A stretch of DNA of 64,000 nucleotides from Klebsormidium nitens (taxonomy: Eukaryota > Plantae > Klebsormidiophyceae): contig DF237021.1 of assembly GCA_000708835.1 (NCBI GenBank), positions 175,624 through 239,623 of the forward strand, read 5' to 3'. The notes beneath the pieces are model-generated. The model saw only the letters and a list, made by a program, of their open reading frames with translations. It was not told the DNA's origin and did not search any database. The position numbers and the translations under genes are program-made. Below are positions 25,587 through 62,400 of this stretch, piece after piece (position 1 is the first letter of the stretch; the number at the start of each line of letters is the position of its first letter).

Positions 25587-27329
25587 GTTTGGTGTAGAGG
25601 GAAAGGCTGTTCTTAAACAGCGTAAGGTTGTTGTGAGGATATGATGAGTAGAGAGACACTTGCAGCCCGGACGTGTTGTGTTGCATGATCGACTGTAGGG
25701 CAACGAGACATGCAGTCAAGAATGACGTACATAGAGACAGTTGCTGAAACATCGACTGAGAGCTGGTACCTTGTGGACAATAAGACGCTTTCCTTTCACT
25801 TGTCCTCAACCCAGCTGTCGACTAAGTCTGCGTTCCTCATTGTGCAAGAACAAGGCAATGAAAGGCTCACCCAGAGCATACTACTCTCAAGCAGTTGCAA
25901 GCTGAAAAGCGTGATTGGGTTACCACAGATCTCGTTGTGCGATGCTTCAAGATTTCCATGTTACCAGGTTTAGTAACGTACTATCTTTTTCAAAGTGAGC
26001 GTGCGTGGGCGGATGCAAATATTGGTCCGGCCTTTTTTGTGTTGCATGGTTGACTCAGGCCTGACGGGAGTCGGAAATTATAATACCAAGTTGTGTACGT
26101 TACAAGTTACTCTTTGATACTCTGTTTAATTGCGATCGAGAGCGCGTTTGGCACACTCACTTTCAATAGCTGGTGATGAAGATCACTCCACGTGGCTGGC
26201 GGCTGACGTCTCCAAATCCCGAAGTCGACTAGACACGATCTGATGCCCTGTTCTTGTACGCGCCCGGCCTACAACCATGTCATGCGCGAGGCTTCCGAAC
26301 GGAACTGTGGCTTGTTGTCTGTGCAAGCGGAATTGGTCTCAAACGAGTGCAGTTGCAATAAGTCTCCGTTTCCAAGGATTCTTGTTCTTGCCATTGCCAG
26401 TCCCATGATGAGCTTCTCCCCTTCGATCTTGCGGCAACGCTATTTCGTTTTGGTCTTAATCTTCGATCATCCTTCGCCCGTAGTTGTACTTGCCTCTTGC
26501 TTTGAGTCTCCGTGCGCGGCTTTGGAAATGCTGCCGACCCGGCGCCTTGGTTCTCGATATCGACTTTCTGGCAATACAAAAGCAATAATTTTTCTGAGAT
26601 TTCTTTCTCCCCGATCGGCTGGAGCTACTTATTTGTTTTCAAACATGTTGAGGGCCTTGCAAATAGGCTCTACAGCTCTACCGACTGCCCCTTCTGATCT
26701 ACCGTACTTCTGCCAGTGCTACTATACCTGTGAGATGGAACAATTGGAACTTCAGGAAGTCCTGCACATCTGCGTTTTGGCAATGATGCTTTATGACTGG
26801 CCACGTGCCACACGTTTCTCAGTATCTCACAGTATGATCGGATGCCAGGTTATTTGGTTGTTGTACTGAGCGTCGAGGAAGCTAGACGTAAGCCGAGGAC
26901 TTGTGCTTCCTTGCGACTTCTTGCATATCAGTCGAGAGCCGTGCTTAAAAAAGTCATGCTGCTTTCTTTCTTCGTTCTATAGGGACTGCTAAGACGATCA
27001 AAGGGCTACAGGTTCATCCCGACTCAATCTTATGAGGCTAAGAAGGCTCGCTTCTCCGACCTGACACGAAGAAATGTGTCAGTGTGTACGCGACAAGTTG
27101 TTTTGCATTACTTCCGAGCCGCGCCAGTTCTCTAATCTGCAAGACGCTGTCTTTTTCTTGAAGAGATAAATACAGGCTTACAAATGGGACATAAATTGGT
27201 CGGTCTTTTCGTCGGCCGCTGCAAATACAAAAGCCGCTTCAATGTCAGTACAATTTGACGCCTTCTTCGCATACGACGGCCTCCCATCTTGCCGTTTTGA
27301 AGAGGGCCCCTTCCCACTGTGTGCATCCT

Positions 27330-27900
27330 CGTCTTTCGATCGCTGCTGTGTGCCGACCAGACAAAGTTTGAATCGGTAGGACCTAGATGCTCTGAACATG
27401 GACTTTCAGACGTGCGGAAAGATACTGATGATTTAACGACGACGTCGGCGCACAAGGCCTGTTACTGAAGCGGGCAGATGGCAATGAGATCAGTCTACGT
27501 GTGGTGGGCTTGCAGTTTCTGCCACCTACTGAATTCAAAGGGAGCCAAGGCTAATATCACGGCTCTTTCCTTGGCTTTACCACTTGTTTTAATGAGGCTT
27601 CAGGCTAAAGGCACGGTCTCGTTCAGACTTCGGTCGTCCCAAGATTTCAGTGCGTGGGTTCTCGTCTTCGTATGCCGCTGTGTCCCTACCGGACAAAGTT
27701 TTTGCATGAGTACTACGGCCCAGAGTCCGGCAACGTGGACTTTTACACGTGCGTACGGATACTAGATTGATAGTCAACGGCGTCGGTGCACAAGGCCTCT
27801 ATTGAAGCTGGCAGAAGGCAATGAGATCAGTCTCCGTGTGGTGGGCTTGTGGTTCCTGCCACGCCGTCAGCTTCAGTGAGCCAAGGCAAATACCACAGCT
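27330..27900. repeat. ~340-bp internal tandem dimer within Array I (also present at ~33380-33950)
   Basis: The block gacgtcggygcacaaggcct...gaagc...ggcaatgagatcagtct...gtggtgggcttg recurs 337-340 bp apart (27479/27816 and 33531/33871). Confidence 0.85.
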
Positions 27901-29519
27901 CTTTTTTTGGCTTTACTTCCTCTTTCATCAGAGCTTGTGAATACGCGAACGTTTCCCTTTTTGAATTCGCTCGTCTTAAGTTGCTCCGTGCTCCTTTTGC
28001 CAACAAATTCTGACTTCGATAGCAAGCGAACCGACAGTCACCGGGCCGACCCAGCACCCAGCATTATTGGTAGCGACCGTTCTGCGGGGGAGTTCGACAA
28101 CTTGGTCGCCATGTCAGCCGGGCACCTTCGGCCACTTTGAATACGTTTTCCGTCAGCCTTGTTGCAAAGGTCACAAAAGAGTCAATCTTCTTATGACGGC
28201 ATGAGTGGGCGGGTCTCCTGTCGAAATAATGGGCGACTCAATCTCCTTTAAGCACACTTTTGGTCGCCCGAAAAGTTGGACACGTGGGCAAGGGCTTTTG
28301 CAGTGGACGGAGCGCTGCCAATTTAGACTCTGGAGGGTTTGCCACGTGGCTATGACGAGCTCCGGCTATGAACTGCTTGTCAGTTCAGCTGAATGTCGGA
28401 CCTTCCCGACCGAGGCCGCTGCTTTGACAATGTCAGAACGACCTCCATTCACCGTATTAGAATGATCAAGGGACGTTTTTGTTTTGGTGGCGAGTGCTCT
28501 GTATTGTGTGTGAGAGGAAACGTCCCTGAAAAGGAAACGGAAGAGTTGTTTCTGCTGATGTTGGCACCGATCCAGTCACACATCGATGTATGTAGGTTGT
28601 TGCAGATTCTAGCATAACAATCACGCTTTTTATCTGTGCGGAAGGGATCGCTCAGGTGAAAGCTTCCATTATTTGGTCCTTCGCGTCACGACTTGTCGCC
28701 GGAACTTCGAAAAGTGAACGGCCCTTGTGTCAACGCCGCCTGACGCCTTGCGTTGTCAAAACATGTTTCGTAAACCCAGCTTGGAGCTAGACCGGCGGCA
28801 GCAACGGCTTCGCAACGGATTATCCTCAGCCCTAAAGGATTGCCTGCGCTCTCTTTGTCAATCATTTACTATCTAGCCAACGACTGTCTCCAGATTATCG
28901 TGTTGGCAGAACCGAGTCTCGTTTCCGGCCCCTGCCGATCACCAATTTTTCTTTCGGACTTTACCTGCTTTTCATCCCAAATCGCAATTCCCAAAGCTGT
29001 CCCAGATTGTTTTGAAGCGCCACGTGACGTACGCCGCAGTGCAAATCGGTGTCCATCACACAGCGAAAACTAGTGGCTGGCAGACCCGGGCCTCATAATT
29101 CATGGTTTCTTTCTGTCGATCAAGTGTGCTGCAAGCCACATGCAAGCGTTTCACGATTTCCGGCTGCTTATCTTTTTCCTCTTTCGATTCGGGAAAGATA
29201 CGCCAAGTTGGGTCGCACGTCGTACCTTCCTGGTCGAGATTCTTACGGCATTTGTTCGGCTTTCTTGTGACCGTCATTACGGAGCGATCGGCCTGGTCGT
29301 CTGAGTGGTACACGTGGCCATGACGAAGGGCGCTGTGGTGGATAAACCACTCGTTGTGACTCCCCTCGACTGACGCTACGGGATTGAAACTGGATTCAAA
29401 TTACCTCGCTCAAGTTCATTCCCCGTCCTCCGAACGCGTTCAGATCCAAGTCTCCCGGTGCTTTACGTGGCACCAGCGCTCTAAAAGTAGCAATATGCGA
29501 GGAGAATCAAAGTAATCAA

Positions 29520-29960
29520 TGGAAACGGACCTTACTTCGATTCTTACGTCCGACGGGACGTTGCTTGATCTCCTTCTTCATCGCTTCGTGCCGCCAGTGG
29601 ATTCTCTGGCCGTACGTGATGGAAAGCCTTGTCGGCGTAGAGACAATTAGCTCCTTTTCCTTCCAGATAGCCAACTCGTCTATCGGCTTTGCCAGCGTCA
29701 AAAAGCTTACCTTGTACAATTGGAGAGTCGCTACCTCTCCTGTAGTTTAGCAACTTGAAACTTCTGGTCTGGCAGTGGTGCGTCAGATTGACCCGGGTCG
29801 ACTTTTCTTCTTTCGTTATCACGCCAGACCCAAGTCAAAAGCAATCCGTGGCCCCTCGGGCAAGTCTTGGGGCTAGTATCATTCTCCACCTGTCTCTTCT
29901 GATCTTTGCAAGAGCTGCATATGCATGTTTCACATTCGTACGTGATTCCAGTCATTTCTG
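29520..29960 (-). pseudogene. Frameshifted remnant of an unidentified protein-coding gene inside the Array I unit (paralog at ~32140-32480)
   Basis: Both copies translate to similar peptides: PGQSDAPLPDQKFQVAK...YKVS...LAK...DELAIWKEKEL versus PGRSDAPLPDQDFQVAK...YKVS...LAK...DELAIWKAREL, and VENDTSPKTCPR versus VKNDVSPRTCPR. Both are broken by frameshifts or stops. The family was not recognised. Confidence 0.4.
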
Positions 29961-32900
29961 CGCATCTGTTCCTCTACGCTTTCTTTGCTTGGTGTCTCTT
30001 CAGCTATAGGACCCTACAAGCCCTTTTCTGTCAGAACCTGGATCCGGTCCTTCACACCTTCACACTCTCACACCTTCACAGTGACACGGTCGGACCAGCA
30101 GGCATTGAGAGGCGATGATGCATATCACTACTGGCGGGCGGTGATTCCAAAAGGTACTGTGTTATCGATCGTACCGTTTTATTTCAAGCCTTCCATCGAG
30201 CGCGTGCGCAACTTACGCGCCCGAATGACGTCACTCAGGCGATCTTCGATGGAATGCCACGTCTGCCCCGACCAGTTCCATGACCTTTTTGTTAGTATAA
30301 TCAACGTTTGGGAAGGTGGCTGCCATGCATGAGACGGCTTCAAGGGTACTTTACTTCCTGTTTGCAAACCGTGTCCAATTGGAGTTCGATGTGGGTGCAG
30401 GCACGGGTTTAGACTGACCTCTGGAGTGCCTAACCGGGACGTACTGTACTTGCCCTCGCCGCCCAGCTGAGGCACGGCTCTTTTCCTGGTCACAGGAAGG
30501 TGGAAATTTTCTTCTGCCAAAGTATGCAACGCAGGTTATCCGATCACGGAGAAGGCTCAGCCCAGAATTCTCTGCGAAGCATTGATCTGGTCGACTACCT
30601 TTTGTCCTCGAGGCATCTGGGAAATTACATCGTGCCTGCTTGAACGCGTCCGCAGGTGGGAAGTGAATAAATCACACTAGGCTTCGGATGGGTCGGTCGT
30701 CGTTCGGCCTCTCGTTGGAGTGGGTTGGTATAATCTCTCTTCCTCCACCAGTGTGCTCAAGAGCGATGACGGTGTGGTTCAGTTGGTGGCCGCTGTAAGC
30801 GGGCCACTCGCGGAATCGTTGTCTGTGAATCGGACGCCAGGTTGTCAAAACCTTTGAAAAGAGCTGAGTCGAGGAACCCTGCTTGCTTGCGACTTCGGTC
30901 TTGCGTATCAGTTCGAAGTGCTCAATAAACACATGCCCGCTTCCTATCTAGGTTCTAGGGAATGCAAAAAGGGCCAAAGAGCTGCAAGTTCATTCCTAAA
31001 CGTTATGAGGCCAAGAAGACTCGCTTCTCGCGACTTGACACGAGGAATTCGTGCTCCGCGATGAGCTTTCTTGTTAAGTTCCGAGCCGCGCCTCTGCTGT
31101 AAACTCTTCCACCTAAAAGCCGCTGTCTCTGCATTGAGTGAATCAAGCTAGAGAACTCGCCAGGGCAGGCTAGAGACTTGGACATGGATCACGTCCTTTT
31201 CATCGAGTGCTCCAAAGTCACAAGCCGCTTCAACCTCGGTCCGCTTGACGCCTTCGTCGCATAAGACGACCGCCCATCGCTTTGAAAGACGAAGTGCGTG
31301 CATTCCCGTCTTTCGTATGTTGTTAGGTGCCGACCAGACAGAGTTTGATCGGAAGGACCTAGATGCTCTGAACGTGGAATTCCAAACGTGCGTAAAGCTA
31401 CTCATTGTTTAACGACGTCGGTGCACAGGCTATTAAATCGAAGCGGGCAGATGGCAATGAGATCATTCTGCGTCTGGTGGGCTTGCACTTCCTGCCACTC
31501 AGTTAACTCCGGGAGCCAAGGCAAAAACCTCAACTCTTGTCTAGGCTTTGCCACTTGTTTGATAGGGCGTTAGGCTGCACGCACAGTCTCTTTTTGAGTT
31601 CGGTCGTCCCGACTTGCACCGTGCCTGTTTTGCCAACAATGTTTGACTTTGACAACAAGCGAACAGACAGTCACAACCCAGCACCCAGCACTGTTGATAG
31701 CGACCGTTTTGCGGGGAGTTCGACAAATTTGTTCGCCGCATCAGCCCCTACGGCCACTTTGAGTACGTGTATGTCAGCCTAGATGCAAACAGTTGAGAAA
31801 ATTTGCTTGACAGGGCCAGGGGCTAAAAAGAGAGTCGCTCTTTTTATGAGGGCATGGGTGGGCGGGTCTGCCAAAGAGATGGGCAAATCGAATCTCTTGA
31901 AGCACATTCGTTGGTCGCCGGAAAAGTTGGACAGTTCACAAAAGACTTTTGCAACGGATAAACCGCTACCAATCGAGGGTTTGCCACTTGGCTGTGACGA
32001 GCTCCGACTATTGTCTGCTTGTCAGTTCAAGAGGATGACGGACCTTCACCCGCCGTGCTTCAAGTGGCGACGTTGCTCTGAGACCTTAATTGATCAAAGT
32101 GCCGCCGGACCTTTCTTCGTCGAAATATGACGCCTGGCCGGATGTTGCTTGGTATCCTTTCTCAGCACTACGTGCCTTTGGATTCTCTGGCCGTGGTGGA
32201 AAGCCTTCAATTCGTTGCGGAGACAAGCTCTCTTGCCTTCCAGATAGCCAACTCGTCTTGTACAGACTTTGCCAGTAGCAACTTGGAGCTTACCTTGTAC
32301 AGTGGAAAGTCGCTAAATCCCTTGACTTTAGCAACTTGGAAATCCTGGTCTGGCAGTGGTGCGTCAGATCGACCGGGGGCCAACTTTTCATGTTTCGTCG
32401 TGACGCCAGACCCTAATGAATCCAAAGCGGTTCGTGGGCCTCGGGCAAGTCCTGGGGCTGACATCATTCTTCACAATTAATGTGTCTTTAATCTTGCAAG
32501 AGCTGCATGCATGTTTTGCGGTAAGTTGTACCAGTCGTTTTTGAGTACGTGTCGCTATACGGTTTCTTCTGAACGAATGGTGTCTTTCCGCTCAAAAAGA
32601 GCCATAAGCCCTCTTCTATCAGGATCGGATTCCGGTCCTTCAACACGGACGAGCTAGCAGGGAGTGAGTTCTCTGCATTTCGATGATTCATAATGCTACT
32701 GGTGGGCGGTCATTTGAAAAGGGACTATAAATTTGACTGCACCTTTTTATTTTGAAGCCTTCCATCGAGCGAGTGCGCCACGCGGGCCTGCCTCTGAATG
32801 ACGTCACTCAGGGGTTCTCCCGGTGGGACTGCCACTTCAGCCCGACCGGTTCGGTGGCCTCGGTGTTAGTACACAGTGACATTAATGAGGAAGGTGGAGC

Positions 32901-35900
32901 TGCCACATGACACGGCTTCAAGGGTACCCTAGCTAGTTTCAATCCGCAAACTGTGTGTCTGAAACTTTGGGTCAAGGCACGGGATTAGACTGACCTTTGG
33001 AGTGACTCACTGCTCCTTAACCAGTAACGGAGGGACGAGAGTCAACGGAGGGACGTACAGTCTGTACTCGCCCTCGCCGCACAGCTGAGGCACGGCTGTT
33101 TTCTGGTTACAAAAAGGCGGATTTCTTTTTTTAGCAGAATCTGCAACGTAGCCTTAAGTTATCCAAATCAAGGAGAAGGCTCAACCGAAACCACTCTACG
33201 AAGCATCCTGTTCGGATTCCGTTTTATCTCCAGGTATCTTGGACATTTCACGTGATGATCGCACTCGGCCTTCCTTCTGAGTACCAGGTGTCATATTGAC
33301 TTTGTACGCGTCTGTGACGACTAGCATTCAACTAGTACTGCTCGCGAATTACTCTTTCTTGAGCGGGTGCAGACTTCTTTAAAGTAACGACAGAAGCCTT
33401 CGTCGACAGAATTTGATTAGCAGGACCTAGATGCCCGCAAGATGGGCTTTCAGACGTGCATAAAGATGCTGAGTAACTAGCAACGTTGGTGTACAAATGT
33501 GCCTTAAGGCCTGTTACTGAAGCTCGCAAATCGCAATGATATCAGTCTACGACGTATGGTACGTGGGCTTGCAGTTCCTGCCACACAGTCCATTTACAGT
33601 ACCTTGAGCCAAGGCAAAACCGACAGCTCTTTCCTTGGCTCTACTCCTTGTTTGATAGGGCTTTGGGCTACACGCACGGTCTCCTTTTGAATTCGGTCGT
33701 CCCAACTTTTCAGTGCGTGGGTTCTCGTCTTTCGCATGCCGCTGTGTGCCGACCAGACAGAGTTTGACTGGTAGGACGCAGATGCTCGCAACGTGGAATT
33801 TCAGCCGTGCGCAAAGATATCCATTGTTTAACGACGTCGATGCACAAGGCCCTTGATTGAAGCAGGCGAATGGCAATGAGATCAGTCTCCGTGTGGTGGG
33901 CTTGCAGTTCCTGCCACGCCGTCAGCTTCAGTGAGCCAACGCAAAACCACAGCTTTTTTCTTGGCTTTAGCCACCATCTTTTTCAAAGCATTGGGTTACA
34001 TGTTCGTTCGGTTTTCGAGGTCGGTCGTCCCATCCTGCCCCGTGCCTCTCTTGCCAACAAAGTCTGACTTTGATAGCAACCGAACGGACAGTCAGATCCA
34101 GCAACCCAGCACTATTGGCAGCGACCGTTCTGCTGAGGAGTTCGACAGTTTGGTCGCCGTGTCAGCCGCGCACCTACGGCCACCTTGAGTACCTTATCTG
34201 TCAGCCGTCAGCCCTTGATGCAAAAACTTGAGGAAGTTTTCTTGACAGGGCAGAGGACCAAAGAAGAATCGTCCTTGTCGTTAGGGCATGGGTGGGCGGG
34301 TCTGCTGCCATACTAATGGGCGACTCGAATCTCTTAGAAGCACACAATGTGGTCGCCTGAAATCTTGAAGACGGCGGCAAGGGCTTTTGTAAGGCATAGA
34401 ACGCTGCTGATCGAGGTTTTGCCACGTGGCTATGACGACGTCCGACTATGGACTGCTTGTCAGTTTAATTTTTGGCCCTTCATGCAGAAAGCCGCCATGT
34501 CACAGTGTCAGTTCAACCTCCATTTGCCGTATGGCTAGCGGTCAAGAAGCGTTGCTTTTCGTCGCAAGTTCCCTGTACTCCGTACAATTCTGTGGAAGGA
34601 ACCTTTGGAAAGAGGAAATCTAAGGTTCCTCCTTTGCTGATGTTGGCACCGATTCAGTCACAGAGCAATACGTGTGGTTGTATCTTTAATTCTGCTGATT
34701 ACTGAGGCACTCGATCTCCGCCGTAAGGATCCTTCAGGTGGGTGTTTTCTACTTGCTGCCCTTTGCGTGTAGGATTGTCCTTCCCGCAACCTGCAATCGC
34801 GGAGAACATGTTGGCCTTTGTACACCGGTTTTCGACGTTCTGAGTCTGGAACCTATTTCTTTTAAAGCCGGGGTAAACTTACCGGCAGCAGCAATGGCTG
34901 GCCAACGCACGATTCTCAGCCTTCAACAGATCATCCTTCAGCCTGTGCTCTCTTTGGAAATCGATTCCTCTGTCGGCCGATCCACTGAGTGTTTCCAGAT
35001 CATTGTGCTAGCAACAGCTTTCGACTCTGGGTTCCCCTTGCCAATCAAAGACCTTTTTTGAGATTTATCAAAGCCTACCTCTTTTACCTCCCATCTCACG
35101 CCGTGTACATGTTGCGCTAAGCTGTTATGGAGTAACCTGGTCGGACCGCAGTGCCTATGGTTCCCGCCAAGAACCGATCGCACTGCGGAAGCCTGTGGCT
35201 GGCGGACGCGCCCTCGTACTTTTGTCGTTTCGATCTTGTTCTTTCAACACTACGAGCCACGCGCAAGCGCTCATACCGCACTTTCAAGTGCGGGCTCCTC
35301 CCTTCGTATGACTCGGACAACGTTTTCACTAGCCGACTTGTGATTTTTATTCTGGCCAAGTCCATTTTTGGATTACGGCTCTGATCCTAGGTGCATGTGG
35401 AACGGCCTAGGTGGCTCACGTGGCAATGACGTAGGGCGCTGTGGCAGACAGCCACTGTGCGCCATCGGTTCCGCGGACGGCCACAGTAGCGAAGTTTGAT
35501 TTGATCTTGATAAGTCCATCCCTTGTCCTTTTGTCCTTCCAACTACTGTACTTTCAGCCTTTACTAGCCCGGTGCTTATGGTGACGTTGCTCCGAGGGGG
35601 CAGATGTGTGCGACGGCGGCTCTCTAAACCAATACGTTGACGAACGGTCCTTGAACAAAGTATGGGTGTGATGCTCTCTCCGGCGATAGCATGAAGAAAC
35701 ATCAAGGTCACTCTCGTTTGGCGTAAAACAAGAACGCCCTGTGTTCGACCGAGTTACCGAGAGTGTCTAGCTTACTCGCCAATCTTATAACTGACACAAC
35801 GTTTGGCAAATCCTCACGTGTATCGTCTGAGCAGCCCGGGCCTGCTGAGCTGTGCAAAATTTTCGGGGGGAATTGAAAGTTATGGGGTTATGCAGTCTGG

Positions 35901-48100: not shown

Positions 48101-51100
48101 GCCATTTACGGTTAGTTGTTGAAAAGCCCATGGATATGGGAGCGGCGCCACGCCATGGAAGTACCAAAGCAGTCGGACCGCTCAAGCCCTTCTGCGGCCA
48201 AAAGCCAACTTGAGAGGCCGCTTATATAGCGCGCCGTTCGAGTAGTCGACTTTTTCTTATCATTTTGTAGCTTCTGTATCATCTTAGACGGGTGCCAATT
48301 AGGACGTGCTCTGTAGCCGGGCAACTGGGCAGACCGGCTGGCCAGTGCTCAGCAGGTGTAGGATGAGAGTGACGGCGCCTCATGGCTGGGCAGGACTTCG
48401 GTGAAGGCCGCATCTGTAGTTCGTAATCTTCAGACTGCGTGCTCATGCTGCCTTTCTCGATAATGGAGACGAGGGTTAAGAACGAGGTTAGGAGTTTCCA
48501 ATGTGCTCCGAGGCCCCGCTTGGTGTGAAGCACCCTAAAGGTGTTCGAGTCTGGCTGTCCTTAATATGATAGTATAGTATAGTCGCCAATGATTCCACGG
48601 AACTGTTTGTCGTTCGCCGTCTTTTCACTATCACTTGTATACATATTGTATCATCATCTGCTAATTTAGATTGCTTACGTGGGTTCGAAAGTTAAACCTC
48701 CCTGAAATTTTGCCCTCGATCGCCGTTGCTTGCTTGTTTTATATCGACTGGTGCAACAGATTCTGCGGCAGTGATGCATCTCAAGCTGATTGACTGGAAA
48801 AGTCACGATTTCAGCGTCTGGACATGAAGCCAAACAGCTGTTGTTTGCATTCATGAGAATAGTTATTCGGCGGCCGGAGTCTTTTTTGCACACTAGCAGG
48901 TGCCCTTTGCAATCTCGTTTCTTGTGCGTTCGTAAGGGAGCTCTGCCTGCTAGAGCGTTGCCACAAGACAGACGCGTCTACCTAGGCGGGCGCATATATA
49001 ACGTCTTGACTGCTTAAAAGGCGGTCGCCTACCTGCTTCGCAACAGCTGTCGTGGCGTTACCGAGTTCCAGAAGTCACATCTGCGATTTTAGTACCTTTC
49101 CATGAACTTCTTAGTCTAATCCAATCGTGAGGGACGGTTGCATCTAGCTGATGTGGGCATGGAAGCAGCTTCAGCCAGTACTGATGAACTTCTGCAAAGG
49201 CCCCCGCGGTTTCTCCGACAGTCGAGACGGCACGTCACGTCGAAAATAACACGAAAGGCTCTCAACGGCTCTAGCCAGGGTTACGTTGCTGACAACTCCT
49301 CATAGTCTTCTCACGTGGCAATGAAGAAGGGCCGGCCAATGGTGAGCTGTCGCAAAGCCCAATGTGCCAGCTCTATGCTCAAACGGAGCCACGCTACGAG
49401 GTCGTTGGAAGATTTCAACGGCTCCAACCCCGTTTTACACGCTGAAATTCTGTTTGCCTGTCAACTGGCCACGTGGCAATGAAGGGTTCTGGCCGATCAC
49501 GGTGAGCTGTTGCAAAGCCCACCGAATATGGAAGGCGAGCCACACCATAAGGCCAGTCAAAGCAGTCAGACCGCTCAAACCCTTCTGCGGCCAAAAGCAA
49601 ACTTGACACGCTGCTTCTTTGAGCCCCGTTTCAACATGATCAGGTTCTTCTGAACCTTTCTTACCAATCTGTCCCATCTTAGGAGTGTGCCAAAGACGTG
49701 CTCTGCAGCTAGGTAACTGAGCAGACCGGCCAATGCTCAGTAGGTTGCGTTCCAATCTGACGGCACCAGGGAAGGTGATCTTGAATCTATCGGCACCAGC
49801 TAGGGAAGGTGAAATTGGAGTGTGAAGGCACCTGTGGTGGCAGAATGTCGGCGAAGTCAGCCGCGTCAGCTGTTTTATCTTCAGACTGCGTGCTCATGCT
49901 GCCTTTGTCAACAGTGGTGAAAAAGTTTGGGGACGAAGTTAAGATTGTCCAACGTATGTGCGAGGCCTCGCCTGGTGCGAAGCGCCTCACAGACGTCCGC
50001 GTCTGGTTGTCCGGATTCCAATGTCCGCATCTTGTTGTCTGGCGTTTGGTTTTTATCACCTATCTGTCGGTTTTCATGTCGTCCGCGTTTGGTTTTACGG
50101 ACCTGCTTCACGGCACTATTAGTGTGTCCCAGTCTTGTCGTGCGTACCTAGTTGTTACATACTTGTCTGGGCTAATCTTGTGGTACAAGAGAACCAGTCC
50201 GCACCTATCTATTCGTCGCAGTTTCTTGTCCGTGTCTAGCCATCCCTAGCAAATGTGCTCGCGTGTGTTTCGACGACCGCCCGTTTGGGTACGCGCGCGC
50301 ATATGGTGGTACTTAGCGAGCCGTCCGCATTCCGTCACATCTGGGCGTCTGTCCGGATCTTTGATCCAGGATTCCACACTGTACTGGTCCGCAACCGTGG
50401 TGCGTTCGTTCATGATCCCGCACTTCGTCGCAGCTCGTAGTATTTCTGTGAGGAGGCGGGCGTCCATCTCTGGCTTCGGAACCACCGGCTCAGATGTATG
50501 GCCGGTTGGCCTCGCCGTCTCTTACTCGCTCTACTAATTCGAAATCTTGCAACATATTTTGGCTGTGACATTGACCTTCTTGACTCGACCCAGTCAATGG
50601 CGGCTATCGAAATTTGCTTGAATCCAATGATTTTCTATGTTTCTGATGCATTTTAAAGAGTTTTGAAGCAAGAGAGGCGCTACTGCTCTCGGAGCGCGCG
50701 TCGCTTGGCAGCCAGGATGCATGACGTCTTTCAATCCTTACATGGAGCACCTGCTTCCCAACTGCTGTCAGAGGCGTTTCTAGGTCACCAAACGCGGAGC
50801 TTCACATTTTTTCGCGCATGGTGTTGGAGTAATGATAGCGCTTCTTAATGTGCAGCTTTTTGGTCTTGCATTTGAAGTTGACCCGCTGTGAGCCAAATCT
50901 CGAGATATGTTGATAGAACACTCTGGGATGGTCTCCAATACTGTTATGGATAGCAATCTAGGTCCATCATATAATGCACGGCGGGAGCGTGCATCCAAAA
51001 CCGTTGAAGGAAGGACCATGTGGCTCGACGTCAGAGAACGGGCCAAACCCGTGACTGTAAGCCCGCAAAGGATCCGGCTAGGTCTTCGAACCGGACCCGC

Positions 51101-54100
51101 ATCTCTAGTTACCTTCGCCCTGAGCCTACTTGTGCGTATAGCTGGACAAGCTCTTCTCTGCGAGGCGAAGACAGTTGCACCACACTTATGGTTCATTGCA
51201 TTGACCAAGCTTACACTGGACGAGCTTTTATGCCACCGCCAAAGGTTTTATTTCTCTCCGTGTTTCTCGAAGGAGCGCGTGTTGAACAGATTCTCTCCTT
51301 TCTGATCCGTTCTGGAGCCCTTTCTGCTTAGTGTTAAACCCTTGCAACTTTGTTTCTGAACATGCCCTGTTGTAAACGGTGCCCACTTAGGGCACCTCGT
51401 AGGTGGGTGCAAGCTGTCGTCGACTAAAAGTGAGTCATACTGAAGTTGGGTACGCACCGGAAAAGGCTAGATGTCGATCACAGCATTTAAAAGGGCCATG
51501 AAGGTACTCAAAACGGTGGTCCTACGCCAGTGCGTTTCTGGTAACTGACGCCCGCTAACACTGCAATGAAGTCTTTGAAGAAGCGAAACGAGCGTTCCCT
51601 ATGCGTTGGAATCGTGAAGCCGGAATCCCCAGTAGGTCTTATTTGTGTTGAGCACTGCAGGGACGAGGTTTCCAAAGTTTCTACCAGTCCCTTTCTTCTT
51701 TCTGCTCGACAACAGGGATATCGAGGTTAACATATTCACTGCCCATATTTGTAGAATCTGTTCTCAGCAAATATGAAAGGTAAGAGTTTGCGCCATGCTG
51801 TTGCTTTAAAAAGTTAAAGCACCGCTCTTCAATCGCTCGTTCTCGGATGGGAGACCAGCCCAATCACTGTCGTCAAGCGCCGAATCCCCAGTGCTTGACA
51901 GACCTCTTCACAGACTGCTACTTTAGTGCTGCACATGACGCTTCGTAAATCGTCAGGTTCCTTACCAGCTTCCTACCGGGCCGACGTGTCGTCTTAGAAG
52001 CGTGCCAAGGACATGCTTTGCAGCTGGGCACCAGGACGGACTGGCCAGTGCTCAACAGGCGGTAGATGTGGGAATCTGACGGCACCTTGAGTAACAAAAC
52101 GGCGGTAAAGCCCTCGTCGTTACCTGTCGCTTTCCAGGCTACATGCTCATTCCACCTTAATTCCTCAAGAGTGCTCAACTTTTGATACGAAGAAATCTGA
52201 TGCAATTTGCGCCCTAGGCCCCCGCCTGGGGCGAAGCACTTCACGGATCGACGTCCGCGCCTGGTTTTGTTCGTTCATTCGTCCGCATCTCCTTCTTTGT
52301 CCGCATTCCGCCTTCGGTAGTCCGCACCCTTGTTGGCAGTGGCCCTATGATCGGGCCGTCCCTATAGGCGCATGCTTCGGCCGCTGGACTCGTGTCTCGA
52401 CTTCAGCACAAGTGGCTGCCCGTGTCTGTGTATGTGTAGCAAGCTGTCCGCACCTTGCTACAAGTGGCTCCGATTCCCGCCTAAATGTCGTCATCCAGGT
52501 TGACTGTCCGCAGCTGTTTGTCTATTCCGTCTTCCGGCACCGACTTGTAGTTTTCGGTGTCTCTGACGGTGATCAGAAAGAGGTCCACTACCGTCAATTC
52601 AGAATCAGAGCTTCGCCGAGAATCTGGTCCGGCCGTCTCCTGCCAGTGCTTGCTCTACTGATTGTTGCAAGAGAATCCTGGGCAACGATGCAAAGCCTCC
52701 CGACCTCACTCACCGTGCAGTGACAAATACATGAGGAGCGGGTCTTGACGCCAAGTGGCTCTTTTTGGGAACATATTGAAAAAATACTCTGCTGGATTGG
52801 CGGGGTCACTTTCCATAGTCTTCCTTGTGTAATATCTGAGATATTTGCTTGGGAGAGCGCTGCCGAAATCGAGACGCACCTTTGATTCCTTGGCGCGGCG
52901 GCTGCACATATGACGTAAGGCGACGCCTACCTGCCTCGCTCTTATTATCAAACGCGTTGCTGACTTTTCGCATGCGGATTGAACATCTCCAGTACCAGAA
53001 AGCTATTCCAAAAAGTACGTTTCGATTTGATATCAGGGGAACTTTATTTAGAGGCTTTTCACGTGGCAACGAAGAAGCTCCGGCCACGAGTGGGCTGCCG
53101 CAAAGCCTATTGTACTTGCAAATCCGAACGGAGCCGCACCACGAAAGAGCATGATTGAGAATTCTTTATGGCGCTCCAGCCCCATTTCCGCCATGTGGCA
53201 ATGAAAATGTTGCTAAACGTTTCCATGTGGCAATGAAACGGGTGCTGATCTGATTTCTGGTGGGCTGTCGCGAAGCCCAACGACGTAGTTCCTACTCATA
53301 CGGAGCCATAGCACTCGGTTGACTCCTGGAAGAAAGGCTCAATCCAACCCCGCTGACTCTTGACGATGAAAATTGAAATCTGTCAAATATCCACGTGGCA
53401 ATGAAAGGGCATCAGCCAGCGGTGAGCTTTCGTAAAGCTCACCAATTTCTTCTTCAAGTGGGAGTCACCCTGATAGGCCTGAACGAAAGCAATGCCAGAA
53501 GCTTGAAATACACTATGTAGCGAAGCTATCTTGGCGGGCTGCGATCTTTGGACGGCGCTCGATGTGGTCTGGCTCACGGGTAGAGATCTCCTTTCCTCTT
53601 TTCTGTGCTACAAAGAGTGCTCACACCTTGGAAATACAAATGCTGGGTTCTCTCCTCGGAACGCCTTCCTCGTGAGCGCCCCGCCATTGGCGGGGGATGC
53701 TTTTCGGTGGCAGAACAGTCTCGAGCAATGCTTTTCTAGTGCTACGATCAGTAGAATAATCCGATGCTGCCACTTGACATGGAAAGGTTTCTTGCCACCC
53801 GTAACACAATACGATAAAGTCTTTATAGTCAGTAAAATTGATGGTGGCGTTTATCAAAAAGCAACTTGTAGCATTTTTCAGTGGGTCCGAGTCTGTTCTC
53901 CACACGTCAGGAGCTGAATACTGATGTTTTCAGTCGCGTGGAATTGGGAACAAAAACCTTGCCCAAGTGGCTCAGGCCTGACGTTCTTGCAGGGTCATAG
54001 CAGTTGGTCAGGATCGCCCGTCGATCTTGACAAAGATGAAGGTGGAGTGGGACGAACCCACTAACGGACCACATACAACCGCGAACTAAGCGTTGGAGAT

Positions 54101-57100
54101 TTAACCGGGCTGCTGTGGCAGCTCTATGCACCTTCGCCGGCTGGAACTCAGGATGAGCTTTTTTACAAATTCTATTCTGCCTCGACAGAATATGTGTAGG
54201 CGCACACGTGTGTATCTATCTTTCGTGCGATCGTGTGCTTGACACTCCTGATTCATCGGCCTCAGCGACCCTGCAGGAAGAAACAAAGCATATTGTGGCA
54301 ATGACGATCTCGCTTAGCGGCATCGAAGTCGCTCGCCATATTTGGCTTGATTCTGGAGGATGCCATGCAGGTGCCACGACTTTTGACGATTTCTGTGCAG
54401 TGAAGTTACCATGATCGCTTCAAATGAGCAAGGTGCTCAATGACGAGCGTGTGATCCGATGAATTCAGGCTGTCTTTCATCACTCGCTAGCCTTTTTACC
54501 TGTATACAGCCTCGCAATCTGCATGCCGGCCCGGGCCGACAAAAAAGGTCTTCTTCCTTAGACCGTTCGCTACGAGATGGGCATGTCTGATATTCCTGTT
54601 TGCTACGTCGCACCGCCGTCACCATCCGCCATGATTCCTTAATCAGCAGCGTCTTGTTAGGGAACTCCCTCCGTCGAGAGCAGACGCTTGATTTACAACC
54701 AAGCATAAAACCCGTTATGCAATACCTAAGCTAGCAAGCGCTTCACTGACCCGATATGAAGTGCAGCGCGCGCGTCCGCGCCGTCGCTCCTGCCGCGATT
54801 GTGACACGCGCGCGCGATCAGAGCGCGCGCGCGGCTCTGTTCTCTTGGCTCGGCGGCCGCATCCATGCGTCTTCATTGCATACGAAACGCGGTACTGAGC
54901 CGCCTGCCTGCCTCGCAATAACGGTCAGAGGCGTTGCCGTTTTCTGGAATGAGGAACTTTCAAATCTTCAAATGCAGTCCCGGTGACTTTCTTCAGCTAC
55001 TTTCGTGAACACTTGTCTCGTTTTAAGCAGCTGTCTACGTGGCAATGACGCATGCAGCTTCGGCCCCTGCTGGGCTCTTGAGAAGCTCACCGGAGTATTC
55101 ACCATGTCGAACGGAGCCACACGACGTCGCGTTTACTTGGAATAGGTTCTGCGGCAGTGATGTCGAGCGTTTTGTCCGGTACAGCCAGAACATTAGCCAT
55201 ATGTGAAGCCAGTCAGCTCTTCTGTGAGAATACTACCTAGCTTTCCGGAGGCCGGAGGCTCAGCTTCGCGGACTGGCAGGTTCCTTTAAAAATCTCGTTT
55301 CTTGTGCTTGTGTAAGGGAGCTCTGCCTGCTAGAACGAAGCCGAATTGGACGCGTCTCCCCAGGCGGCCGAATGTATGACGTCTTGCCTGCATAAGGCGG
55401 TCGCCTGTACGTGCTTCGTATTGGCAACAGCTGTCGTGGTGTTGCGGAGTTCCGAAACTCACATTTGCAGTCCCAGTGGCGTTTCCACCCACTTTAATGT
55501 TCAGTAATGGTTTGAGAGTTTGTATCTGGCCGGTTTGGCATGGAAGCCGCTCCAGCCAATACAGGTTTCGCAATGCCCACCGCATTTCAATCGACATTCG
55601 AGAGCCACACCACGAGGTTAAAACGAGATTTAAGACTCCCCAATGGTTTCGACCACGCGTACTTTGCTGAATAATCCTCATCGTACTTCTCACGTGGCAA
55701 CGAGGAAGCACCGGCCAATGGTGAGCTGTCGAAGAGCCCACTGGACCGCGTCACTTGCACGGAGCCGACAACACGAGGTTGAATGGAAGACTTCGACGGC
55801 TCCAACCCCGTTTTTTGGCGCTGACATTTCTTTCACCAGTCAACTGTCCACGTGTAGTGGCAGTGAAGTAAATGTGGCCAATCACGGTCAGTTATAAGAA
55901 AACTCACCGGTACACAAGGAAGCGGAGCTACACTAAAAGGTTACTCGAAACAGACGTCAGAGTGCTCAAGCCCTTATGCGGCCATTTGAAAGCTAACTTG
56001 GCGGGCGTGCTTCCACTAAGCGCCGTTTGAATGGTCAAGTTCTTCAAGCAATTCTTATTGGTCTGTTCCATTGTGAAAGTGTGCCAAGGACGTTCTCTGC
56101 AGCTGGGCAACTGGGCCGGCCGCTGCTCAACAGGCGATGGCCAGTTCTGACGGCACCAGGTATAGGCGTTGGAAAGCCCGCGTCGTTGCTTCTTTCATTT
56201 TCAGAGAGCATGCTCATCTTGCGCCCTCTCTCTACAATGGTGACGGCGTTTGAGGACGAACTTGAGAATGTCCACCTAAGTCCGAGGCTCCGCTCGGTGC
56301 GGAGCACCTTATAGACTTCCGCGTCTGATTTTCCGCACTAATCGCATTTTTCAACGACGTGTCTGTCAGGGGGAGGTCCTACTGTGAGGTGATTGATGGC
56401 ATCTTCCGGCTCAGATTTTGGCCCTTGCCCTATTAGCGTAACGGTACCCGCTCTGCTGAAACATATTAATGTCAATGCAACAGTCCTTTGGCTGTGATGT
56501 TGACCCTCTTGTTTCGACCAATTACAGGAGTTGTTTTCGAGCGCACTCTTGAAGCCAAAAAGCTCTTACGTATTCATCTGAAAGTTCTGCAGCCAGAGCG
56601 CTACCCCTTTGATCTGGGCGGCCGCACGTAGGCGTGTTTGTTTTCACGTAGACTAAGGTGCCTGCTTCGAATCTACGGTCAAGAGGCGTTGCCAAGTCAC
56701 CAAACGCGGAGCTTCACAGTCGCAGCTCCGATAAGGTTTTCCCAATTACTTTTTAGTTAGATGCACCTTAAGAGATTGTCCTTGCATTGGCGGCTTTCCA
56801 CGTACGTGGCAATGAAGCAATGAAACTTTGGTGGCCGCGATCGGGAATCCAACCAGCATTTCCGGGCTTCATTGGAGGGGAGCCACAGCAGAAGAACTTC
56901 AAAAAGAGCTCAACGGCTCTTTCCCCGTTCGCTAATGATTCATTGGTTTAGATGTCATCTGTCCACGTGGCAATGAGAAGTTCCGGTCATCGGTGAGCTG
57001 CCGCGTGTCGCAAAGCCCACCACGATCTCTTCGGATTTGAAAGAAGCCTACATTACAATAGACGGATTCAACCCGCACTGATGCTTTTGCTGCGGCATTT

Positions 57101-58784
57101 GTTGACAGCCTGCTTTTCTCAAGCGTCACACACAGGGAAGGGGCGGGCTAGATCTACTGCCTCACGGGTCGAGCGGCCCAGTCACAAGCAAGTTCTTCGA
57201 AGCTGCTCTTCCATCTCCGACCTGTTATTGTTTGCTTCTCTCTCAGTCGTCTGTTCATGAGGCACCAAGCAGAAAGCGAGATCAGTCGTTTGATTCTTTT
57301 GGTTCCTCTATTGCACATTGCTTTTGCGTGATCCTTGGTAGATGTCCTTCGGGACGTTTCCCTTCAGGGAAAATTGTCAATCTCGAAGGAAACCGGAAGC
57401 AAGCTGTCGAAGCACAGCGAAGACAGGTGTTGGAAAGGTGAATATGAGACCGATGAAGACCGAAGGTCCACGCTTTGGTTAATTTGGTCCCAACACTAGC
57501 ATTGTCGCCCAACTTTGAACGGAAGTTTTGTGGCAATGACAAACCGCTTTGGCGGCAACGTGTTGCCAGGCTCGGTTCTCGCTGAAATTCACGTGGCTTA
57601 TTAATTGAGATCTACTGTACCTGATCTTTGCCTTAAGTATGTCGTCAAAGACGCGCAGTAACGAGCAAGCCAGGAACTCAGCTGCTTTGTTATTCATTTT
57701 ATCTCACAATCTGCTTAGAGGCCTAAAAGAGAGGTCTTCTTTATCAGATTGGCAAGGAGAGGGGCCAGTGGTGTGACAGCAATTTCTGCTGGCAGATACA
57801 GCTCGTCTGGAGCCACGTGTCAGGATACTTCGTGCTTTCTTTATGCGCTCAATGACCTCAATTCGAGTAGAGATGGTCATGTCCTGTTTTCTTCTGAACT
57901 CGCGCCGCGGTGTCGTTGGATTTTCGTGTCTTCGACGAAGATCATTTGCTCCTTGATCCAATAGGGCATCATGTTCGTTTTCTCCTTGGGTAGGCGCAGA
58001 CCTTCTTCGGAGTAAACGACAAAGCCCTCATCTGACACCATGCGTTTCGCTTGAGGAATCTAGAGCCTTCAGTGGGTCTCCTCTCGAAAGCAGTATTCCT
58101 TAAAGCATTGGTTCCCACCGACGTAGTTTCTTTTGCCCATTTGAAGCATCCTGAGTGTGGGCGCAAGCTTAGATTTGTCACCAACATCGTCTGAGTCTAG
58201 TAGCATTGGAAGACTTTCCGTTCATTTTATTTTTTTCCATGCACGGCACGCAGTGTGCGGAGCGGCGGCCGCGGACATGCCTGATCCCGTCAAAATTCGA
58301 CGGCAGCGATGAGGGCCTCGGATCGGCTTTTCAAATCGTACAGAACTTCCTCGTGAGTACGCATGCGGCCACAAGTTCCTCAAAAAATTCTTCATTCTGG
58401 GAAGCCCTCTAGCTCAGCCTCAAAATAAGCTGAAAGCCGTTCCTTGCTGACGGCATCACTTCAAGTTTCACGAAGCCTTCGGGATCGAATCTCGTCAAGT
58501 ATGACGTCACGAGCGCCATACGAGGAAGCTTTTCTGTACGAGGAAGCTTTTCTTCATTCTTGTTTCTCCGCTTCTCTGTCGTCACCGCTTTTCCTCTTTG
58601 AATGTTTGTGAAGAATTAACGGTTGCACGGACTGCAGTTTACATCGTCAAGTCCTTCTACTCTGTCGTATTCTGACTCTCATCAAAGTTGTGTCAAGGAC
58701 GTGCTTTGGCGCAGCTGGGCACTTCGGCAGACCGGCCAGTGCTCAAAAGTTGTTTGCTACGAGCTGGCCAGCTCTTAAGGCACC
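42140..58784 (+). repeat. Module A: seven ~75-95 bp nested-stem elements GTGCCAAGGACGTGC...TCTGACGGCACC
   Basis: Copies lie at 42140-42214, 46595-46675, 48291-48379, 49687-49767, 52002-52086, 56081-56157 and 58690-58784. The terminal GTGCC/GGCAC and internal TGRGCA/TGCTCA sequences can pair. Confidence 0.85.
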
Positions 58785-59450
58785 GTGCCTAATGCTAATT
58801 GGATTCATTCCTTGTCGTTACCTTCCGCTTCTGTCTTTTCCAAGCTGCACGCTTATCCTGCTCACAGCGATAAATGCTCAAGACCCACAAAAAAGAATCC
58901 ATAATAATTGTTTCCAAGGCCCCAACGCCTGGCCCCAAGACCTGATTGCGATGGTGCGCGTCCGAACGTCCGCACCTGGGTGTCCGAGTCGTCTTGCGTC
59001 CGCACCCATTTGTCCGAATCTCACTTTACATTGCTGTTTCTGTGTTTGTTTGACCGCATCTTTCCGCCGGCACCTACGTACTCCCATCTAGTTGTTCGCA
59101 TCTAGTACTCGTCCTCATCTGACCGTCTCCGGCCTAATGAGAAGGTTTTGGCATTTAACCGTGGATGGTTATGGGCTGCTAATGTGGCTGGTTAGCTAGA
59201 GTATCGTACCCAGCCCCGAACAAGTTCATGCTCGGTTATTGGTCGAACGACCTGGGACCGTCTTAAGTCAAGTCTGGCAATCAACCTGGTCATAAGCAGC
59301 CAAATTGCTGCCCGCGTCGACTTTGACTTGGCTGGTGTCGGCATCTGCGGTAATTAGCATCGGACTGTCCGCGTTACGCTGCACGCGTCCGGTTTCGGTC
59401 CGGATCTTGTCGTCCTCATGTCCCAATACTCTAACGAATATCTAACTGTC
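42380..59450 (+). repeat. Clusters of the short motif (T)GTCCGCA(T/C)C downstream of module A
   Basis: Dense clusters occur at about 42380-42620, 45300-45400, 46960-47150, 49990-50400, 52250-52510, 58960-59100 and 59360-59450, mostly in the same orientation. Confidence 0.75.
54760..54835. repeat. Alternating (CG)n tracts with Z-DNA potential
   Basis: gcgcgcgcgt, cacgcgcgcgcg and gagcgcgcgcgcgg lie within about 75 bp. Similar GC-rich islands occur at 38440-38780 and 63965-64000. Confidence 0.55.
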
Positions 59451-62400
59451 CGTTCTCACGAGCCTCCCGCTCTAGATTTGAGTTGAAATGCATCTGCCCC
59501 CAAGATCCGTGGGGCCGAAATGTATGCTTTTGCAAACACCTTTGACCTTACCATCGCGAGCTTGCTCATACGTAGTCTGACAAGTTCGCAGAAACCGGCC
59601 GGCCTGTGGCCGTGATGTCAAGCTCAATGACTGCACCAAACAAGTCAAGAGCGGTTCGTCAACCGTTGAAGCCAATCAGCCCCTGTTTCCGGATAGTTCC
59701 CCGCTTGCGCCTCTTCCTCGAAACTGATTCCCCTGCGGTCTTCTTTATCGTGCATCGTGCGTGAAAACGTTCATCAGACGTGAGCTTTGCAAGCCAGAAG
59801 GGCGCAGCCGCAAGAAAAACGCCTCCGAACCCTGCGCGCACGCGGTCGGAGGCCGCCCGCATGTATGTCGTATACATAGCTGACGTAAGGCGGTCGCCTG
59901 CCGGCTTCGCACTGACTGTCAGAGGCGTTGCCGAAACATCTATCTTGGAAACTCATCTTTGCAGCCCCCTGAGTGGCCTTTTCCAGCTGCTCGCCAGTAC
60001 GCGTCAATTCTGTCAGCTGTCCACGTCGTGGCAATGAAGACGCTCCAGCCGATGGTGGGCTGTCGTTTAGCCCACCTGTCTCATTGTAAACTAGGAGCCA
60101 CACCACGAGGTTCCAAACAAGGCTTCAACACCATTAGCGGCGACGTTAATATGTAACCTAATCAACTGTCCACGTGGCAATGAAGGATTACCAGCCAATG
60201 GTGAGCTTTCGTAGAGCCCCCCGGTCCTCTTTTATCCAATGAGAGCCACACTACGAGTTTAAGCGAAAGGGTCGCCGACTGATCTATAACTCCATTGATC
60301 ACGGCGGGTTTGGCTTGGAGGGCTGCTTATCTGGCAGCAAACGACTCGGTCGGATTTAGGGGATGCAATCCTTGCTTCTTTTCGTTGCTTGATGAGAGCA
60401 CCTTGAAAAGCTTCTGCTGGGTCCCCGTGTTTGAAAGTCGCTTCTGCTCTCTTTCTCTGGCTCATCAATCAATGCTTGATCATGAGGCGGGAGAGGAAGG
60501 CCGTCGAGAGAAATTGAGGGGAACGGCAGGAATCGACCAGTAAGGGGCTGCCACGTGGAAGTGACAACCTTCTGGCAACCTCTAACCCGACCTTTCAAAG
60601 TAAAAGCGGAAGGGCAGTGTTTTCGCAAGCGCTGCGGCTGTCCTAGATACAGTTGCCGAATGTTGCCGAAAGAACTTCAGGAACAGCTGTGTTACTTGGG
60701 AATGCTTCGTTTTCACGCTGAGCTTTTCATATGTACTTTCTCTCTACCATTTCAGAGGCCTACTAGAAAGGTATCTCTGTTTGGTTGGATATAAGATGGT
60801 CTGCCGGTCTAGTAGTTCCACGTCAAAGGCTGCACTGAGGTATTTGTGGCACAACGCGAAGTCAAGCTAACTCGTAAAGCCGACTCATGCTTACACGTCT
60901 GCGTCGAAACAACTCATGCTCCCTCCCCTGGCAGCTCGAGTCAGGGCAGTTTGCAGCATGCTCGGTCGCTGGGTGAGGTCGCAACTAAACTGGTTGAATT
61001 TCTTTGTTCTGTATTGTCTATGATTTATAGCCTTCGTTTGGCGACGATGAAAGTAATGATGTATGGCACGTTACTTCAGACAAAGCTCGATGTCGCACTG
61101 CTTCACGGGGCCATTCTGCCCGAGCACCTTCAATCTTCTCGCACCAACGGAGCTGCCCTATGGTCATATAAAGGTTAGAAACGTGCTGGGCCACACCAAA
61201 ATTCCGAATCTGGTGACGAATCACGTCCCTCTCTGCGTGATAGGAGAAAACTCCAAAAGTCAAAAGTGGGCTCGTGGATCGTGAGTCACGCGTTCCAAAT
61301 ATCCCCGGCAAATAAAGTTCACCCAGCTTGAAGCGAGCAACTCGTTCCACTTTGGACAGAATCGGAGGTTTCTTGAATACCTGGACTGTATCAGGCCCCC
61401 TCCCAAGAAGAATCGTAGCAGTGGCGACAAGGTCTGGCCGATCAGATTGACCGGATCGACCAGAGAGTGAAGAAAAGCGAACCACATTTAGAGCCGCAAG
61501 AGTTCATTTTCACGGACGATCGACTTAATAGGTGCCGCCGGTGCTCTAGCGGGCTCTAGCTTTCTGTTCATCGTGGCCCACTTATTATGAGATCTGATTC
61601 TGCCTTTGCGCTCTAACGCTCGAATATTGAAGGAAGGTCTGTGAATTCGATGTCGGTTTTCTCTGTGGATCAACGGCGTGAGAAAGACCCGATTGCGAGT
61701 CTGCTCATTGTGCTCGCCATCTTTGTTTCACAATCTTGGACCCTTTCAAACAGGAACGGGTGAATCGAAAGATCTTCCTTCCCGAGCTAGCTGGGACCGG
61801 CTATGAAAATCAACTCTAGCTAGAGTTCGATAAGCATTTTTTGTTTGCAAGTCGATCGAAGCAAGCGCCGCTACAAGCTTTCACGTGGCAATGACCAGCC
61901 TCATATATTCTGGTGGGATGTCAGTAAACCACGACGCGAATGGGAACAGTTTCAGAGCCAACGTGGACTGTTTCAGATGAGGGTCGGCTCCAACTACGAG
62001 CTTGTCATTAAGGTTCTTTCGTTGAGCGCAAGCTGTTTTTAGCCGCAAATACCTCTGATTCAACGTGACCCACGCACTGGCAAGACCGATACCATGCTTC
62101 CTGTCCATATTCTTAGATGATTAAGAATCCGAGGAAACAGAAGAGCTTAGTAAGTCATGTGATTACGTCCCGTGCTAGCTCTGTAAGGAAGCAAGGCACA
62201 ATCTTCCAAATGGAGCTGCAGTGGTCTGTACTAGTGTGCTTTTAGAAGCTAGCAATCGTCTAGACGTCAGCTGCGCCGGCGGCGTCCGGTCCAGTACTGC
62301 TGTCATGCAATCGCCTCTGTCAAAAATCTGGCGATGAGTGATGTGGGGGTAATTTGGCACACTTCTGCCATGTCAGTTCCCTCTCGTGAGTGCCACATGA

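Follow-up and report, generated by a model that had tools for sequence, protein, structure and literature searches.

A sense-strand array of kink-turn-closed, box C/D snoRNA-like units behind the Fpg gene of Klebsormidium nitens

[quoted passage not shown] In the SNORD115/116 and SNORD113/114 clusters, tandem orphan genes with constrained stems and boxes evolve by birth and death, and at the Prader-Willi locus such genes are reported to change faster inside than in their flanks (PMC4063771). Published algal snoRNA clusters are small, with 49 snoRNAs in 12 clusters in Ostreococcus (PMC7671301). Box C/D-like anchors combined with variable spacers are also a feature of the TIGR arrays (TIGR-Tas) of prokaryotes and their viruses, which are built from 36-nt units with alternating repeats and 9-nt spacers, have no kink-turns and lie adjacent to a Nop-domain tas gene (PMC12045711). 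Here we describe an array of kink-turn-closed, box C/D-like units (26777..62395, + strand, by curated census) in the streptophyte alga Klebsormidium nitens. The window analysed comprises the last 64 kb of scaffold DF237021.1 (GCA_000708835.1), which ends at 239,623, and the array directly follows, on the same strand, the Fpg/MutM gene (GAQ81163.1; 17366..25586, +), its likely host or former host. The Fpg protein encoded in the window has 99% identity with the K. nitens entry. We found no paper on snoRNA-like arrays in Klebsormidium.

A preliminary description of this DNA had drawn attention to a repeated 13-mer containing a G-box (CACGTG). The 13-mer, CACGTGGCAATGA, does occur in nine exact copies (0 expected), all on the + strand and none before 26 kb, and its variants lie, as claimed, almost entirely on that strand (allowing ≤2 mismatches, 29 matches against 1.8 expected, every one on + and 28 lying past 27 kb). 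The invariant part, however, proved to be neither the 13-mer nor the G-box, but the core TGGCAATGA, which is shared by unit families otherwise little alike and for which word counts gave 25 exact copies on the + strand, none on the − strand and none in the genic region at 1-26.7 kb. CACGTG lies ahead of 13 of the 45 clear units in K. nitens, and the ‘extended consensus’ given there occurs exactly once, at 60163. The main pairing had been overlooked: it joins the motif’s own UGGC to the GCCA that follows a second GA, the GGAGCC noted previously being this second half. UGGC-AAU-GA thus pairs with GA-GCCA 50-75 nt downstream to give a kink-turn frame made of a 4-7 bp stem, a 3-nt bulge (mostly AAU) and a tandem GA, which closes a unit of about 60-85 nt.

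This frame could be recovered by a descriptor demanding only GC, a 3-nt bulge and GA, followed by a distant GA plus a complementary arm, which matched 38 times on the + strand of the array, as against 1, 2 and 2 times in strand and region controls and 2.4 ± 1.6 times in shuffles. A partner was found at 48-85 nt for 17 of the 25 exact cores, compared with a background of 11%. The closing stem was predicted unprompted by RNAalifold, and where its four inner pairs vary, they do so only to G-U wobble. A covariance model built from one of the unit families (family M, below) recovered 18 copies at E <0.01, all on the + strand and 14 of them belonging to the training set, and gave weaker matches to other unit families. 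Relaxing the descriptor brings in families A and B.

The 5′ stem-loop of U4 small nuclear RNA (snRNA) has a C-stem ending in GC(C), an AAU bulge and a tandem GA. The K. nitens units share this succession of elements, which belongs to a motif class described in PMC8162545; U4 differs in closing a short loop within one snRNA, and no Rfam U4 match was found here. Judged by its sequence, the unit is a C/D kink-turn as defined in that work (PMC8162545), in a degenerate form. At the RNA level, the 5′ strand resembles box C: the bulge is AAU in 23 of 45 units, and the consensus RUGAUGA is degenerate, with U at L3 in 35 of 45 and G at 4b in 28 of 45, together with a purine at L2 in all 45 (largely imposed by the descriptor). 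The 3′ strand is box D-like (CUGA in 7/45, CGGA in 8/45, and others), its GA being there by construction.

In total, the census includes 45 clear units and about 18 degenerate ones (~63 altogether, at 26.8-62.4 kb), which are irregularly arranged with a median spacing of 439 nt. This exceeds the ~35-40 copies first estimated, and the last unit found (62329..62395, +, relaxed descriptor) lies beyond the 61990 originally given as the end. The array reaches to 1.6 kb from the scaffold end. The window closes with the scaffold (62400-64000 being its last part), so that the array or its host transcript may carry on in another scaffold.

Three families of units, all on the + strand, were defined at 42-60.4 kb. 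In family M, the type unit (47922..47998) has the arm GUGGC, an AAU bulge and GA (box C-like), and ends with a box D-like UGGA and the arm GCCAC; its interior is made up of a spacer A, an inner stem (47948-47970) and a variable slot, slot B. Further members lie at 49314..49393 (with a 6-bp closing stem), at 53395..53468 (containing the perfect inner hairpin, 53421-53443, singled out previously), and at 55039..55120, 60028..60101 and 60174..60249 (by descriptor and covariance model). Family A, which was first detected as a plain direct repeat, is represented by the unit at 46595..46674, with a canonical box D (CUGA), and by units at 42140-42213, 52002-52085, 56081-56156 and 49688. Its closing stem, GUGCC/GGCAC, differs from the GUGGC/GCCAC of family M by a two-sided compensatory change from G-C to C-G. 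Family B has a RUGAU box C and includes units at 42831..42900, 45783, 47379, 48766, 55151 and 59607. Ahead of these families the array holds, also on the + strand, a unit without CACGTG (27479..27547), a unit whose box C reads AUGACGA and whose box D is the canonical CUGA (29313..29380), and a paralogue of the latter found with the relaxed descriptor (35420..35484).

The DNA surrounding these units had been taken to be heavily diverged; in fact, it consists of old direct duplications of 57-76% identity, arranged in two blocks (26.9-35.3 and 42-60.4 kb). Duplication block I (26884..35269, +) contains copies of 0.3-2 kb that are 67-76% identical, with unit families at 27479/27816/31452/33531/33871 and at 28347/31989/34427 and a related pair at 29315/35421; duplication block II (42070..60422, +) is composed of macro-units of ~1.4 kb that are 57-72% identical and harbour families M, A and B. 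Comparison of the window with itself (71 of 72 self-matches direct, none inverted inside the array) shows the units to have multiplied through tandem duplication of 0.15-4 kb.

Every hairpin named in the preliminary description, together with every GGAGCC/GGCTCC pair, was located where it had been reported. The inner stem lies ~16 nt past box C and has conserved arms (identity 0.82 and 0.70). Its covariation, a central claim of that description, turned out to be weak, since at the variable pair of family M an A.C mismatch is present in 5 of 13 copies, alongside G-C in 3, A-U in 2, G-U in 2 and another combination in 1. The fraction of paired cells was 89.0%, compared with 87.7% in shuffles (61/500); two pair-count measures did exceed shuffles (2/500 and 5/500). 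The second pair, GGAGCC...GGCTCC, is present, but as a competitor of the kink-turn, because the helix takes up box D and the 3′ arm; it is found behind 13 of 45 units in K. nitens and 0 of 39 in related lineages, and, at a guess, it may serve as a processing aid. In block I, a hairpin of up to 9 bp with the same geometry (27541-27592, 27877-27928, 31512-31563 and 33605-33656) would likewise sequester box D and the 3′ arm; it is kept through G-U changes and is absent in the relatives.

Using an Fpg exon search, we found contigs of three related lineages, which we take to be Klebsormidium relatives because their exons are 83-84% identical to those of K. nitens and their introns are ~80% identical to one another. 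Units of this kind are present in all three, in Fpg intron 2, upstream of the H2TH exon. Sense and antisense units number 17 and 0 in one lineage (stem ≥4 bp) and 18 and 3 in the second, and several were found on the short contig of the third. In the second lineage, intron 2 was read from end to end (the sole case) and measures 16.2 kb, its GT-AG borders lying at the orthologous position. As all three relatives carry units there, the unit family is, on this comparison of sequences, old, tied to the Fpg locus and intronic on the sense strand. The boxes of one relative are closer to canon (RUGAYGA in 13/22, exact box C in 6/22, CUGA in 8/22), and the stem II pair 4b-4n is kept in 21 of 23 and 14 of 16 units of the relatives, switching between G-C and A-U. 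The K. nitens covariance model scores the relatives’ units down to E 0.0007; one-to-one orthology between K. nitens units and theirs was not found, except that family M weakly resembles one unit. Just inside intron 2, both relatives (L119:2799-2842, about 170 nt into the intron, and L115:19-75) carry a divergent duplicate of the end of Fpg exon 2 on its 3′ side, together with its GT donor.

The position of the array relative to Fpg differs in K. nitens, where intron 2 (18890-21500) is 2.6 kb long and free of units, and no genes are annotated within 10 kb downstream of Fpg. In the two relatives read that far, no array was found in the first 4.7-5.7 kb behind the Fpg stop codon. The K. nitens array may have moved, or both Fpg sites may once have been filled. 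Fpg intron 4 of K. nitens holds a unit with a 7-bp stem and an inner hairpin (23352..23418, +) and a candidate with a 3-bp stem and an inner hairpin (22801..22853, +). At 25583-25588, overlapping the stop codon of Fpg, stands GTAAGT, a perfect splice-donor word that possibly opens a giant 3′ intron across the array, or may be there by chance. A homologue search with the last Fpg exon gave no match besides the gene itself.

Conservation within the units is unevenly distributed. In duplicated blocks of K. nitens, the frame is 94% identical, the interiors 77% and outside DNA 76%, the figure for the frame being somewhat inflated because the units were chosen by their frames. This comparison of paralogous sequences shows the kink-turn frame to be under purifying selection, and it supports the view that the array consists of a selected element specific in both sequence and structure.

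Slot B, defined as the 16 nt ahead of box D, shows the opposite behaviour. Among 10 orthologous units of two lineages, 91% of aligned columns are identical in the C frame, 96% in the D frame, 87% in spacer A and 68% in slot B, compared with 83% in the intron background. By windows, slot B reaches 0.66 against 0.80 for the intron (Mann-Whitney p 0.001, permutation p 0.006) and against 0.75 for windows beside conserved anchors (p 0.027), and it falls below ordinary Fpg intron 3 (0.79). Three-lineage figures agree with this two-lineage comparison, and the duplicates within K. nitens, which are partly non-independent, give 0.62 for slot B versus 0.70 (p 0.009). Family M slots are close to random, with an identity of 0.47 as opposed to 0.44. 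The length of the slot is confined (17.7 ± 2.9 nt). No excess of CpG was seen in slot B in the orthologue comparison, and no slot B was clearly nearer to a paralogue than to its orthologue, as exchange between paralogues would have it. In the sequences compared, these figures show slot B to diverge faster than the flanking DNA. The blocks of the units at 27816 and 33871 are 67-75% identical, yet the 20-nt slot ahead of box D is the same in both units, which could reflect recent gene conversion or a constrained guide.

Most likely, the array works like a box C/D snoRNA cluster and is not a TIGR array, a satellite or a transposon; of the options first put forward, an array of non-coding RNA gains support. 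With the box C/D clusters of Chlamydomonas, Ostreococcus and land plants it shares a terminal stem and a kink-turn formed from C- and D-like boxes (PMC8162545), as well as a unit size of 60-85 nt and sense-strand intronic clustering (PMC7671301). It differs from them in its mostly NNGA box D, an inner stem that is not C′/D′, the lack of antisense to surrogate ribosomal RNAs (rRNAs), a slot ahead of box D that changes fastest, and dozens of units at a single locus. In the SNORD clusters the units lie one to an intron in a non-coding host, with constrained functional elements, whereas here many units lie in one intron of a protein-coding gene (in the relatives) or behind that gene, with several unrelated interior families and a presumably independent origin. 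Unlike TIGR arrays, this array has kink-turn units of 60-85 nt at irregular spacing, and no tas gene was found beside it, the 35 open reading frames (ORFs) of the array region giving no Pfam match below E 0.027, although genes that are spliced or broken may escape such a search.

We consider it on balance probable, by analogy with these systems, that the locus is a tandem family of orphan box C/D snoRNA-like RNA genes whose slot B guides on non-ribosomal RNA. The array would be read as a single long RNA polymerase II precursor, namely the Fpg intron in the relatives and, in K. nitens, a product of read-through, of a 3′ intron or of promoters of its own. Snu13, and next Nop56/Nop58/fibrillarin, would bind each kink-turn; nucleases would then strip the spacers, the bound proteins setting the ends of the units. 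The inner stem would occupy the place of C′/D′, and the single-stranded slot ahead of box D would act as the guide, pairing with targets in non-ribosomal RNA whose evolutionary turnover is fast. As no target was identified, guiding is the weakest link.

Several findings weigh against this reading. With box D as CUGA in just 7 of 45 K. nitens units and pair 4b-4n present in 25 of 45, many units may bind Snu13 without assembling a methylating ribonucleoprotein (RNP), or may be decaying. Internal C′/D′ boxes were not found in the units; the inner stem (UGRGC...GCYCA) stands in their place, without tandem GA. In Rfam, nothing in the window reached the gathering score, and searches of the array and of one relative at E ≤10 gave chance matches only. 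Tested against six surrogate rRNA sets, neither K. nitens nor a relative showed any excess of rRNA antisense over shuffles. To these can be added the inflated conservation of the frame, and the possibility that slot B could be only neutral DNA within a constrained background.

The main rival, which we regard as rather unlikely, is an array of kink-turns without guides, in which Snu13-type proteins bind to units that serve as a scaffold, sponge or stabiliser, whether these stay within one long RNA or are released as RNPs, slot B being a free linker. The degenerate box D and weak stem II of K. nitens speak for it, as do the near-random slots of family M and the failure to find a target in the surrogate rRNA sets or in searches of two 20-mers against viral sequences; long non-coding RNAs of the sno-lncRNA type are known as protein sponges at the SNORD116 locus (PMC8162545). 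A free linker is harder to reconcile with a slot that diverges faster than Fpg intron 3 and than anchor-adjacent windows, yet stays within a narrow range of lengths, and with the near-canonical boxes kept in the relatives.

A bolder extension of the guide reading, which we hold to be improbable, is that the array belongs to a diversifying library, spread across the genome and numbering hundreds of guide RNAs in a C/D frame, in which the slot ahead of box D would be positively selected to track fast-changing viral, transposon or messenger RNA targets. If true, this would be a eukaryotic variable-guide system on a snoRNP chassis. Two slot-B 20-mers gave no exact match to viral sequences, a very weak test. 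A gapped motif pattern gave no match in viral contigs and a single chance match in metagenome sequence, in an actinobacterial-type cytochrome oxidase operon.

We see little chance that the units are ordinary methylation guides for rRNA, snRNA or transfer RNA (tRNA), the targets of which escaped a search limited to surrogate rRNAs. These surrogates (plant-, fungal- and other eukaryote-type, not K. nitens’ own) came from eukaryotic rDNA contaminating bacterial assemblies, in contigs of which none was regarded as human, and were delimited with the help of conserved motifs at their ends and of their lengths (1.8 and 3.4 kb); plant- and fungal-type rDNA contamination was observed in at least 110 contigs of bacterial reference genomes (L003-L112). 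Such guides would fit the C/D architecture and the clustering within introns, which recall Chlamydomonas and Ostreococcus (PMC7671301), and a few duplexes of 10-11 bp do adjoin box D (29315, 43992, 53228 and 62329). Against the six rRNA sets these duplexes are, however, no commoner than in shuffles. The guide of an rRNA-directed snoRNA is its conserved part, whereas slot B is the least conserved part of the unit. Since the rRNA antisense test failed, we advise against classing the array as a family of methylation guides for rRNA.

Readings at the level of DNA fare worse. An array of G-box (bZIP/bHLH) or CDEI-like binding sites, possibly a centromere-like satellite, as envisaged in the preliminary description along with HUH or integron sites and an abscisic acid-responsive element (ABRE), would agree with the CACGTG ahead of 13 of 45 units, conserved in family M, and with the location near a scaffold end, but we judge it very improbable: among the 39 units of two related lineages, CACGTG is found in none, the core is asymmetric and one-stranded with a complementary kink-turn partner at an RNA-like distance (~65 nt), there is no tandem monomer (Tandem Repeats Finder returned nothing relevant), and in the relatives the units lie in a sense-strand GT-AG intron. 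Remnants of mobile elements or recombination sites (long terminal repeat sub-repeats, Helitron or Mutator-like element ends, integron-like cassettes or a snoRNA-derived retroposon), which we judge equally improbable, would account for nested repeats of several sizes and for an array whose place with respect to Fpg is not the same in K. nitens as in the relatives, but hardly for almost exclusively direct self-matches, copies with colinear flanks as in tandem duplication, paralogues that have not swapped slots, the lack of viral or metagenome matches, or the 35 ORFs at 26-64 kb without a Pfam match below E 0.027, a search that spliced or broken genes could escape.

Other candidates were tried and rejected. 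Protein-coding readings (HVAM or RGN frames) have no long ORF, and conservation is not codon-like; a tRNA-derived short interspersed element found no support from ARAGORN, which identified 0 tRNAs in the window; and for type 3 RNA polymerase III snRNA genes, the upstream sequence element gave 28 matches against 24.5 expected, with a land-plant element that may not be that of Klebsormidium. A selenocysteine insertion sequence (SECIS) has an AUGA/GA core followed by a regular helix II of 11-14 bp and lies in the 3′ untranslated region of selenoprotein messenger RNA. The units fold without a regular helix II, and no Rfam SECIS match was found. As a weak indication of expression, 3% of the words of 46-56 kb were present in two runs, from two studies, guessed to be RNA.

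Several other elements were noted within the array. The macro-units of block II contain an element that is not a kink-turn (family D19), which starts with CGCCTRCCTG, ends with GAGGCGTTGCC and is preceded by a TGACGT word and GC-rich DNA; its copies (46052-46090, 50744-50782, 52924-52962, 54901-54939 and 59895-59933) are possibly promoters or other RNAs. A short word, GTCCGCAT(CT), forms clusters only on the + strand, downstream of family A units (42370-42610, 46820-47140, 49990-50400, 52250-52520 and 58960-59110). Promoter-like GC-rich islands at 38460-38760, 54770-54860 and 59790-59860 make several transcription units possible. Ahead of the array (2142-25586) lie an IscU-like exon (2142-2513, −), YCF54, TGD2/MlaD (−), an EF-hand protein and Fpg, and an inverted repeat at 1-50/165-212 (90% identity across 50 nt) is the sole inverted self-match of the window.

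What is new at this locus is the link to Fpg as host, together with a slot ahead of box D that changes faster than its flanks. The slot that rRNA guides conserve changes here at about twice the intron rate between orthologues, which, if real, speaks for selection exerted by changing targets. With 50-60 such units at one locus, a streptophyte alga would offer an independent case in an organism that can be cultured, through which the function of orphan snoRNAs would become directly testable.

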